Positions 58,565 to 62,720 of a DNA stretch of 64,000 bases are shown one piece after another. A model generated the notes under the pieces. It was not told the origin of the DNA. It saw nothing but the letters and a program-made list of their open reading frames with translations, and made no database searches. How positions within the stretch are numbered: the stretch's first letter is position 1; every line of letters starts with the position of its first letter. Origin of the DNA: Ramazzottius varieornatus. Taxonomy: Eukaryota > Animalia > Tardigrada. The translations under genes were made by a program, and so were the position numbers. The DNA lies in NCBI GenBank assembly GCA_001949185.1, contig BDGG01000008.1, positions 1,240,001 through 1,304,000 of the forward strand, given 5' to 3'.

Positions 58565-59959
58565 CAGTGTCTACATACGGAGCACTGCACATACACTGAT
58601 ATGATTATCCTTGTAAAGCTGTGCGTCGGCTAGAAGTTTGTAGAAACAGCTTATCATTCATTGCACTTACGCGGCTTAGTGTGGGCAGATTCTTGTTGAA
58701 GGTTTTGATCGAGGGAAGTCTTGTCTGTCTGTCTGTCTTTCTTGTGCAACGAGAAAGGGGGAGCTCACTCCGAACCATTGGAAATCATTGTAAAGACTCG
58801 CTGAGAGCTGCAATGTGAAGAAATCAAGTTGAAATTTTGTGGTAAAACATAAAACTGGAAAAACGCTGTTTGGGTAAGATGAAGTAAGAAAAGAAATCTT
58901 TTTACGATAGCACTGTAGAAACCGAAACCTGTTGATAAAATCCGTGTCGGTTAAAAACCGACACTGATAAAATTTACCGTCAAAGCATTATGAAACGTTT
59001 CCGTCAAGCATCAAACTTCAATAAAAGAGCACGGTCCGGAATTTTGAGAGGCCCAGTTCGTATCCGATGATTCCGATCACTGGAGATCGCTGGGCTCATT
59101 CGCATGGGAAAGAGCTCGGATTCGCGAACGAAGAGGGTAGGCGTCAAAGTCCGTGATCTTGTGACAGATACCCATGGCAGCCGCTTGCACTCTCTTGTGA
59201 AATGACGAGGATTCCACAGGCATCGTGACAGGATCAGCATCGCGAATGATGCGCGGAACTGCAAGCAGAATGACACAACAGTTTAACAGATTAATTGAAT
59301 CCGACCGCATTACCTTTCGAAGAAACCACCGGCTTTTCGGGCTCCTCCCTGAGCTCCCGCCTCTTCACGAATGGCGGAATCTTCAACGGAATTTCTTTGG
59401 CGCATTCCGAGAGATCGTGCGGGAAGAGTTTCCGCACACGTAAAACTGCAAATCGGGTTTCTCGAGTCGCTGTTTCGGACCTTCTCCATGGCTCTGCTGG
59501 CGGCTGCCAAGCCGTGGATGTTCGTGTGAGCCATGAAGAACAGCGCCAGACGACGCTCGTAACATTCATACGGATTCTGCTTGTCCAGGTCGCGCTCGAA
59601 CTCTCTCTCCTGCTTTGACTTACTGGGCGAGTCATCTGGTGTCGGAAAGTCTTTGGGTCTTCAGATGGTCCTTCCATGACGCGACTTTACCATGGTAGGA
59701 TTGTCTGCTTCTTTGTCTTGGAGAGAATCTGCGTTCTCCATTGTCAAGAATTTGGCCTTGGTCGCCTGTCTCTGCAGCCACTGAAACTCATTAGTCCAAA
59801 AGACATGTTCGATGACAACATGCATCGACCAAGTGTGGGCTACTGTACCTGAAGCCGGTACTCGGGGTTTCTCCGAGCCTTGGATCATTGCCCGTCTGGC
59901 CATTTCGGACACGGAAGTTGCAGCGGCCAGTGTGTTTGGCAGGTTGTCATCTTCAAGCT

Positions 59960-60916
59960 TCCCATCCGGTGTACCTACCGTCAGAGAGGTCTGGTGAAAC
60001 AATTCAGGGTGAACGGTAATAAAGAAAGACTGATCGAAAACAGGCATACTTACATCGGATGTACATCGGATGGCGATCTTTCCGGATTTCTGTATGGTGA
60101 CGGTGGGGCCGGAGTCGCCGAAACTGATCGTCGCACCTTTCTGGATTTGCGGATCGAACCTGCGAAATATCAGACGAGCGAGTTGCCGATAAAGACACCT
60201 AAACAAGCAAAAGGGTAGGATTTTCACTCACACTACTTGTTGGTAGAGGGAGTTGAGCTTGCGGAGGTTGACCTGGAATGGGAGCTCGAAAGCCGTGTAA
60301 ATGCAGTTGAACCGAAGTTCGAAGACCCCGACATCCGGGTCGAGTTTGCTGAACTCCCATGCGATCTTCAGAGCGACAACGTTCACTTCCATCAGGCTAA
60401 AGGAAAAAAGACAGATTACCAACCGGAATTCTCAGTACCTCACGAGTAACTCACACGCGAAAAATTAATTCAGTGACGTACGTGAATTTTGGGAGATAAC
60501 ACAGTAGTACCTCTTTTGCCCAAAACACCGAACGAACCTTCCCGATTCACGTGACATTCCCCGTTGTAGAATGGAAATACGATCACCATCTATGAAACAG
60601 AAGGAAGTCAATCTGATTGTAAATTAGCCCAATATTAGATTTCAGATCCAGAAGGGATCACCGAGCAGGGATCTTCAGTACTTACCCACTGAGAATTCTG
60701 TTTCCGGCTGAACATGGTGCCGCAGTTTGAAAGAACCGCATCCAGTGGTGCTTTGAAGGCCGCGGTCTGGGACAGCCGGAAGGTGGAGAGTACGCCCAGT
60801 CCGCTGACTTCAATATTATTCTCGAACTGGAGCAGTGAATCCTTTGGTTTAGTGGGGAACTGGGTTTGGCAGATGCTCCGCGCAAGCCTTTGCAAGTTCT
60901 TCTTCTGCACCGCCAT
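59960..60916 (-). CDS. Highly divergent TBP/TRF2(TBPL1)-fold protein; probable C-terminal extension towards ~59000, unresolved
   Basis: Exons 60916-60686, 60589-60511, ~60396-60233 and ~60159-59990 align manually and colinearly with both TBP repeats. One splice junction (60511/60396) is phase-inconsistent as read. Confidence 0.55.
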
Positions 60917-61016
60917 CTTGGACAGTAGGTCGGTTCGGGATCTCGCAACCTGCACAACACAGAAAATGATTTCCGTCACAGTTACGCTAGTATCGAACGT
61001 CCGATTGCACAAGACG

Positions 61017-61899
61017 TAGAGCTGTAACTGTTAATGGTTTGAACCATATGGTTTGGTTTGGTTTAAGTGGTGGTTTGCATGCCAAACCGGTTAAATGAAA
61101 ATGGTTTCTCCCACAAACTACAAAAACTGGTTTGGTCCAAATTTTGAACCAGACCATTTAAACCAAACCACATAAACCGCCGGTTTGAACCGGCTTGCGA
61201 ACAACTTTCCGATCACCAGCACATAGTAAATTCTGCCAGTTTTCTTCACTTGACTAAACAACTAAGATAACCACCGAGAACAAGAAACTGAGCCAGAGTG
61301 GCTGGTCTCTCTACGAACACACGCAAACAGGCAAAACTGGCGCGTGCTGGAATTAAAGAAGCACCATGGCAAGCCATCCGGTAGTGCAATCATTTTTCCA
61401 CCAGCAGTGTTGTCCAACACTGCCGGAACTGCGATTTTTACCTGACGGAAGGCGTTCTGATGTCGCGCAGCTTGTGACACGGTGCTCACCCAGTTAAAGC
61501 TGTGCATCACGTGCCACTCAGAACGATGTGGCTGCGCACAGTGGCAGTGGATGGAAAAGGATTGGCACTACCAGACGGCCAATTTCGGCTCGAGTTCTGG
61601 CACGGAATCCGCAGATCTCGTACGAAGTCTGCCCTTACTGCAAACTAGTGCTGGGATAAATAAGATGAAATACGATATGATATTTTCTGATAAATATCTT
61701 TCAATATTTATATTCCGTTTTAGATACCAACCACGTATCGATATTTCGATATGATACATTTCTGATATGTTATTGTTGATATATCGAATTTTATTGCAGT
61801 GATATATCGATATATCAAGCCAGTACCATGTTGGAAACTATCGAAATCAAGAAAGAGCCACAGAGACACCAAACGGCTATCCTTCACTACGTTCGAGTC
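61017..61899. mobile_element. Truncated inverted second copy of the composite hAT element
   Basis: Near-identical reverse complement of ~51693-52563, including the junction of the nested element; only one terminus is present. Confidence 0.92.
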
Positions 61900-62354: not shown

Positions 62355-62720
62355 ATGCCGCGTGTATCCGCTTCCAAATCGGCGAAGAATAGTGGGAGGA
62401 AATGGGCTGCCGAAGACAATGGCGAACCGGCGGACAGCCGGGACGGGTCGCGGAGGGATGAAGACCAGACTGGCCCAACTCCATTCAATCTCTCCACGCG
62501 ATTCAAGGCGGATGTTCTGAAGAAGTGCTTGTCCAGTGGCTTTGAGGACTCCAAGACCAAGCTATCCAACGAAGCCCTCATCATGATGGCCGAAGCTCTC
62601 CGTTTTACTGTTTATGAAACGCTGGCCAGAGCTGTAAATCAGGCGAGTGCCGAACAAGTCAACACCGTGGAAGTCTCTCACGTTGAGAAGATTTTGCCGC
62701 AGCTGATGCTTGATTTTTAA
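62355..62720 (+). CDS. CENPX: Centromere protein X / MHF2 histone-fold protein
   Basis: FEDSKTKLSNEALIMMAEALRFTVYETLARA..VEVSHVEKILPQLMLDF. Confidence 0.92.
   Translation: MPRVSASKSAKNSGRKWAAEDNGEPADSRDGSRRDEDQTGPTPFNLSTRFKADVLKKCLSSGFEDSKTKLSNEALIMMAEALRFTVYETLARAVNQASAEQVNTVEVSHVEKILPQLMLDF

Follow-up and report, generated by a model that had tools for sequence, protein, structure and literature searches.

Canonical TBP (Pfam PF00352) has two repeats, each with a colinear S1-H1-S2-S5-H2 pattern, and carries four intercalating Phe residues, numbered here as F193, F210, F284 and F301 of human TBP after PMC4180970. TRF2 of bilaterians, also called TBPL1 or TLF, has a two-repeat TBP core with loss of TATA-intercalating Phe residues and a basic C-terminal tail after the core; its signature as described by Duttke et al. 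is F210W and F284H, with F301 kept (PMC4180970). [quoted passage not shown]

We analyzed a locus of the tardigrade Ramazzottius varieornatus that resembles each of these systems in part. It lies in a 64-kb window, i.e., the whole stretch of DNA that was analyzed (contig 8, positions 1240001-1304000), of the 55.8-Mb genome, and its database label is hypothetical protein RvY_13152, 375 amino acids (aa) in length. The locus shares the colinear pattern of both repeats with canonical TBP, and it shares the two-repeat core, the loss of intercalating Phe residues and the basic tail with TRF2. The loss of Phe also recalls the C. cohnii factor as cited there; that factor, however, is sole and functional, whereas the locus is a supernumerary copy with a disrupted open reading frame (ORF). 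An intact TRF2-like gene is found separately on contig 5 of the same genome; the ORF of the locus, in contrast, is broken twice. We consider it fairly probable (roughly 0.65) that the locus, an extremely diverged duplicate of TRF2/TBPL1, is a transcribed unitary pseudogene of young age, in the sequenced strain at least.

Transcription and splicing of the locus

A genome-wide search found the locus to be single-copy and detected no processed copy of it in the R. varieornatus genome. The stretch is contained in 20 runs labelled "RNA?"; 15 of these name a study, and four studies are represented among the 15. One run from each of the four studies was used for transcript mapping to positions 58800-61300; the contig totals of these four runs are 12-27 Mb, compared to 56 Mb for the genome, with approximately 0.3-0.75 of sampled words present. 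Six joints were found in the contigs, all GT..AG and on the minus strand, five of them in four of four runs and one in three of four:

60686 to 60589, minus strand, intron of 96 nt, four of four runs
60511 to 60396, minus strand, intron of 114 nt, contigs of four of four studies
60232 to 60159, minus strand, intron of 72 nt
60054 to 59974, minus strand, intron of 79 nt
59849 to 59771, minus strand, intron of 77 nt
59314 to 59258, minus strand, intron of 55 nt

Within the gene, no base or indel difference between RNA contigs and assembly was found in the four runs. Because the genome holds no processed copy that could mimic splicing, the spliced contigs represent genuine transcription of the locus, i.e., the gene is transcribed from the minus strand and spliced. 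The 55-nt last intron is also retained in separate contigs (59231-59343) of two runs, beside the spliced form. The exons are as follows:

60686-61057, minus strand, exon 1, 5' untranslated region (UTR) and coding sequence (coding 60686-60916, ATG at 60916); contigs reach 61035-61057
60511-60589, minus strand, exon 2 (79 nt), strands S2-S5 of repeat 1; present in every spanning contig
60232-60396, minus strand, exon 3 (165 nt), H2 of repeat 1, then S1' and H1' of repeat 2
60054-60159, minus strand, exon 4 as spliced (106 nt), S2'-S5' of repeat 2
59849-59974, minus strand, exon 5 as spliced, with the acceptor at 59974 and not at the annotated 59990
59314-59771, minus strand, exon 6 as spliced, a single 458-nt exon with the conceptual stop TGA at 59632-59634, then 3' UTR
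58800-59258 and continuing beyond 58800, minus strand, last exon, 3' UTR, entered by the joint 59314 to 59258

Exon 1 encodes an N-terminal extension followed by S1, H1 and the start of S2 of the TBP-like repeat 1, and it ends at a consensus donor (TGG/GTAAGT, phase 0); the donor of exon 3 is GTGAGT, phase 2. The four peptide stretches from which the original prediction had stitched a TBP-like gene were all found on the minus strand exactly as quoted, and all are bordered by GT/AG.

The database protein RvY_13152 is an artefact of its gene model

RvY_13152 maps exactly to 60690-60916, 60232-60396, 60054-60159, 59849-59990, 59330-59635 and 59077-59258. This model skips exon 2 via a weaker donor 4 nt upstream, uses the acceptor 59990 where the RNA uses 59974, removes 59636-59848 where the RNA removes 59772-59848, and places a donor at 59330 where the RNA has 59314. 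Two of its introns, 293 and 213 nt, are unusually long beside the 63-72 nt of the others, and they coincide exactly with departures from the RNA. RvY_13152 is an ORF-maximising artefact, and it is unfit for structure or orthology work because the transcripts contradict its model at four of five introns. We found no mention of RvY_13152 in papers or supplements.

The locus had been described as a cryptic gene, possibly with a long C-terminal tail down to ~59000. It is not wholly cryptic, since the gene is already in databases as a mis-modelled protein. The tail is not coding: the transcript after the conceptual stop is 3' UTR, and the proposed tail, as well as residues 214-375 of RvY_13152, is 3' UTR read in convenient frames.

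Descent of the locus from the TBP family

Among 24,736 Pfam families, TBP (PF00352) was the best for RvY_13152, with an E value of 8.6e-4 for a match of residues 109-164 to profile positions 8-66; this single stretch scores 19.5 bits, below the curated cut-off of 22.9, which is thus not reached in both repeats. An exon-by-exon Pfam search of the locus gave no match, and a six-frame genome scan with PF00352 gave 29 hits, none of them at the locus. A custom hidden Markov model (HMM) built from eight TBP-domain ORFs of the R. varieornatus genome matched residues 95-161 of RvY_13152 (19.7 bits, P 2e-8), and hhalign aligned residues 76-165 with a probability of 81% and an E value of 1.2e-5; exon 3 falls within both of these matches. 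The peptide of exon 2 matches S3-S5 of repeat 1 of TBP paralogues, with a best score of 41 to an intronless paralogue (L014) and an empirical p of 0.002 against 4,000 random open 26-mers of the window, taken as the maximum over 8 targets. By comparison, a MAFFT placement of the last 26 residues of exon 1 on S3-S5 was rejected, as its score was at chance level (p 0.96). A weak match of exon 3 on contig 1 (L012; E 0.03) was judged to be chance on reading, and a PDB sequence search yielded nothing relevant.

With the 188-aa ORF, the whole of RvY_13152 and its residues 30-215 as queries, no orthologue was found in 1.84 billion representative or 5.8 billion clustered proteins, where only RvY_13152 itself matched; exon 1 as a query likewise matched RvY_13152 as the sole database protein among the 1.84 billion representatives.

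All structure models are of the mis-spliced RvY_13152, which lacks exon 2. Over residues 30-204, its model in the ESM Atlas reaches a TM score of 0.51-0.54 to clusters of archaeal TBP and to clusters of TBPL1; by ESM language-model features, TBP-domain clusters are nearest (score 0.88), which is a lead only. AlphaFold2 was unconfident with the single sequence (pLDDT 38), and the Foldseek result for that model carried no meaning; with an alignment of TBP paralogues, a biased test, pLDDT was 63-79 over residues 110-165. For this biased, alignment-guided model, each of the first 34 rows listed by Foldseek was a TBP (best E 1.3e-4), and the Z from VIA-align was 7.7.

The blank exon-by-exon Pfam search, the six-frame PF00352 scan that misses the locus and the unconfident single-sequence AlphaFold2 model would fit a chance resemblance, with the locus being an unrelated orphan transcript. 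We give this reading hardly any credence, as independent lines converge on TBP, namely, the profile (P about 3e-8), hhalign, the ESM model, and intron positions, phases and exon lengths shared with the TRF2-like gene. Altogether, TBP-family descent of the locus is well supported, and the two-repeat TBP/TRF2 ancestry originally read from the stitched exons agrees with the profiles, hhalign, the ESM model and the intron positions.

Residues at the intercalating Phe positions

We compared the positions of the four intercalating Phe residues in alignments with the TBP paralogues. Both repeat 2 positions lie in exon 4 and are Q at the locus, with "IQKGA" at F284 compared to "LFPGL" or "LHPAA" and "TIQKSGK" at F301 compared to "LIFVSGK"; the F210 position, in exon 2, is N. 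The equivalent of F193 is ambiguously aligned, but no Phe is found there. The earlier claim that the Phe residues are replaced is therefore borne out, with Q and Q in repeat 2 and N at F210, and with no Phe at the ambiguously aligned F193. The EPEL stirrup of TBP contacts TFIIB; TRF2 has EPEL at this site, whereas exon 4 of the locus encodes DPQI. The hallmark residues of TRF2 are also absent, with N, Q and Q at the locus compared to W, H and F at the F210, F284 and F301 positions of the TRF2-like gene of the same genome.

Introns in common with a TRF2-like gene

The R. varieornatus genome holds at least 29 PF00352 matches by the six-frame scan. In canonical TBP of this tardigrade (L001) the core is a single exon, unlike the core of the locus with its four introns. 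Two other TBP genes are referred to below:

G000:C5:2541500-2544800, minus strand, TRF2/TBPL1-like gene (L017), exons 2141-2446, 1652-1734, 1342-1509, 955-1049 and 530-774
G000:C7:1490200-1492200, plus strand, divergent intronless TBP paralogue (L015) of 234 aa, ORF 567-1268, Pfam TBP E 2.5e-22

The TRF2-like gene is intact, with five exons, an 897-nt ORF of 298 codons and a basic-then-acidic tail. The phases of its core introns are 0, 2, 2 and 1; the internal exons measure 83, 168 and 95 nt. Once corrected for the two lesions described below, the locus has all four of its introns at the positions and in the phases (0, 2, 2 and 1) of this gene, and the internal exons of the locus are of near-identical size, i.e., 79 nt (80 expected), 165 nt and 106 nt (95 plus 11). 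The counterpart of exon 2 of the locus is the 83-nt exon B. Exon 3 aligns gap-free and in register with the 168-nt exon C (z 4.0), and exon 4, likewise gap-free, aligns with exon D from the first residue on (z 5.5); Pfam profile position 33 falls both at the beginning of exon D and at the matching residue of exon 4. Sequence identity between the two is approximately 20% in repeat 2, and the pairwise similarity in repeat 1 is not significant. Because intron positions, phases and exon sizes are common to both, we consider the TRF2-like gene the probable parent of the locus.

The genome also contains TBP homologues borne on Polinton/Maverick elements. Intronless TBP-like genes lie beside Polinton-type genes at six loci (L003-L007 and L014), and the TBP ORFs of these and of L015 have no introns in the domain. 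Most PF00352 matches are intronless TBP-like ORFs of 190-250 aa, present in several near-identical copies and some of them frameshifted (L003-L010, L014, L016 and L018-L020), on contigs 1, 7, 11, 13, 14, 20 and 24. Some TBP-like ORFs face an A32-like packaging ATPase head-to-head or lie close to a putative polymerase-like ORF.

These homologues belong to the same family as the locus and have comparable similarity to its exons 2 and 4, which raises the question of whether the locus might be a relic or domesticated copy of such a gene and not a TRF2 duplicate. Exons 2 and 4 score equally or higher against the intronless paralogues (z 5.5 and 5.0 for L014), phmmer ranks L004, a neighbor of an A32-like ATPase, as the best partner, and the hits by ESM features are viral TBP clusters. 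Against this stand all four intron positions and phases common to the TRF2-like gene, set beside domains without introns in L003-L007, L014 and L015. The element-borne copies that were read are also multi-copy and beside element genes, unlike the locus, and they keep the Phe positions of FPG and F/Y-x-x-GK that the locus has lost. The neighbors, moreover, are all ordinary host genes, and no element genes are nearby:

62355-62720, plus strand, single-exon CENP-X (MHF2) histone-fold gene, Pfam E 2.7e-18
from 63020 onward, DUS3L-type CCCH zinc-finger gene
about 58065, plus strand, CUE-domain gene, convergent with the locus
about 55014, mitochondrial ribosomal protein L22 gene

We therefore regard an origin from a Polinton/Maverick-borne gene as highly improbable and retain descent from the TRF2-like gene.

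The CENP-X gene lies approximately 1.4 kb upstream of the locus in divergent orientation. The intergenic DNA between them (61028-61240 and 61700-61830) is repeat-like, with blocks rich in GGTTTGG/CCAAACC and in ATATCGATAT. RNA contigs of other genomic copies, with differing flanks and small indels, align to 61028-61176, and this suggests that a dispersed repeat lies at or near the 5' end of the locus transcript. At the other end, transcript contigs extend approximately 2 kb past 58800 toward the convergent CUE-domain gene. It is probable that the two genes overlap at their 3' ends, and contig depths are for this reason not specific to the locus gene.

Two frame breaks in the mature transcript

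The ORF of the mRNA from the ATG at 60916 has 104 codons. The 79-nt exon 2 joined to exon 3 reads GCC TGA, with the stop at codon 105 (TGA 60392-60394), two codons into exon 3; this stop overlaps the ATG at 60389-60391 of the repeat 2 frame as TGATG. The phase inconsistency that had been noticed at 60511 to 60396 is thus genuine. Exon 2 (lesion 1) has 79 nt where 80 are needed for phase 2, and the junction, AG/T in the TRF2-like gene, would be expected as AG/C at the locus. This break is not an assembly error, because the RNA contigs carry the identical 79 letters with no base or indel difference, and it is not escaped by exon skipping, because every spanning contig includes exon 2. A frame-keeping spliced transcript across 60511-60396, on which the original prediction depended, did not appear, as in each of the four studies the contigs carry the joint 60511 to 60396, which breaks the frame. 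Ribosomal -1 frameshifting or transcript slippage at an AAAA run was also considered and rejected, as there is no slippery heptamer, the run has only four A's, and the contigs have no inserted base.

The second lesion is located at the end of exon 4:

60050-60071, minus strand, 11-nt tandem duplication that includes the exon 4 donor, 10 of 11 positions identical

Here the 11-mer ATCCGATGTAC is followed by ATCCGATGTAA, and the spliced donor is that of the distal copy, GTAAGT. If ended at the proximal copy (60065), exon 4 would be 95 nt with phase 1, matching exon D of the TRF2-like gene. Tandem 11-mers of such kind number only 7 in the 64-kb window. The repeat 2 frame, covering H2 and repeat 2, is open from the ATG at 60557 for 135 codons. 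The ancestral frame of exon 5 encodes a loop and an H2'-like helix, whereas the actual mRNA frame ends there at TGA 59885-59887.

The ORF map of the RNA-supported mRNA contains no ORF spanning both repeats. When both lesions are bridged, by one unknown base after exon 2 and by ending exon 4 at the proximal copy, the phases become 0, 2, 2, 1 and 1, and a single ORF of 278 codons results, with the stop TGA at 59632-59634, compared to 298 aa for the TRF2-like protein. The mature transcript therefore carries frame-disrupting lesions, as a transcribed unitary pseudogene does. Log-odds of codon usage, with long ORFs from the window as the training set, favor the TBP-type frame in each of exons 1-5; for exon 2, the score is +5.0 in this frame compared to -12.7 and -0.9 in the others.

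Could the locus nevertheless encode a protein? Minor or regulated isoforms might restore the frame and produce a two-lobed, Phe-less TBP-like protein of about 275 aa, with the major isoform being unproductive. On paper, frame-keeping routes exist through the acceptors 60385 and 60430, the weak donor 60501 and the proximal donor 60065; splice sites and transcription are maintained, codon bias favors the TBP frame in exons 1-5, and assembled contigs hide rare isoforms. Yet the assembled contigs of four studies carry only the frame-breaking joints, the rescue sites are weak, one being an AG that follows a strong acceptor by 11 nt and the other a GTACAT that competes with GTAAGT, and both rescue sites would be needed within one molecule. 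We think a functional gene of this kind unlikely.

We also weighed a reading in which the mRNA yields one or two half-TBP polypeptides, alone or paired as a split saddle. ORF1, 104 aa, would comprise lobe 1, and ORF2, which overlaps ORF1 and has 135 aa from the ATG at 60557 (or starts from the ATG at 60391), H2 and lobe 2. Both are open, with codon scores of +15.1 and +15.4, and jointly they cover the whole domain; the overlap of the ORF1 stop with the start of the repeat 2 frame would also suit this arrangement. Reinitiation after a 104-codon ORF, however, is inefficient in eukaryotes. The ORF1 stop, moreover, lies upstream of four exon junctions and may make the mRNA a target of nonsense-mediated decay, and ORF2 ends out of frame and without helix H2' owing to lesion 2, which fits decay better than design. 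Half-TBP products are accordingly quite unlikely in our view. It is very unlikely that the frameshift is itself a design, a natural "split TBP" with ORF1 and ORF2 separately translated; if that were true, the lobes would assemble into a Phe-less saddle or serve as half-site decoys for TFIIA/TFIIB-type partners.

A probable decaying TRF2 duplicate

The reading that we prefer is that of a decaying TRF2 duplicate. In this reading, a TRF2/TBPL1-type gene was duplicated, and the copy kept the four introns and the two-repeat TBP layout but diverged extremely and lost its intercalating Phe residues. Lesion 1, one base short in exon 2, ends translation from the start codon at codon 105, and lesion 2, the 11-base duplication, moved the exon 4 donor and breaks the frame a second time. 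The duplicate is still transcribed and spliced at consensus sites, but its mature mRNA has no single two-lobed ORF, and presumably no functional protein is made from it. The proposal of a working, lineage-specific factor found no support, given the two frame breaks in the dominant mRNA (contigs of four studies); pseudogenisation, named originally as one alternative, is the best reading, with both frame breaks present in the transcript contigs.

The decay appears to be recent, as suggested by intact splice sites, a positive codon bias and an ancestral frame free of internal stops past the first break. The stop-free ancestral frame carries limited weight, as 166 codons are open in a second frame of the locus as well. 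As counterpoints to a pseudogene, all six introns are still accurately spliced, RNA was assembled in every run examined, and the TBP-type frame is stop-free over exons 1-2 and over exons 3-4 with positive codon-usage scores. Because of this open frame and these scores, some constraint, or a function of a short protein, could persist at the locus. The lesions could also be strain-specific, if the RNA runs, all with the same species label, derive from the sequenced strain.

If the preferred reading is correct, the locus represents a lineage-specific TRF2 duplication in a tardigrade that diverged almost beyond sequence recognition and was caught decaying. It would thus offer a small case study of the birth and death of basal transcription factors, in which parentage may be read from common intron positions where sequence similarity fails.
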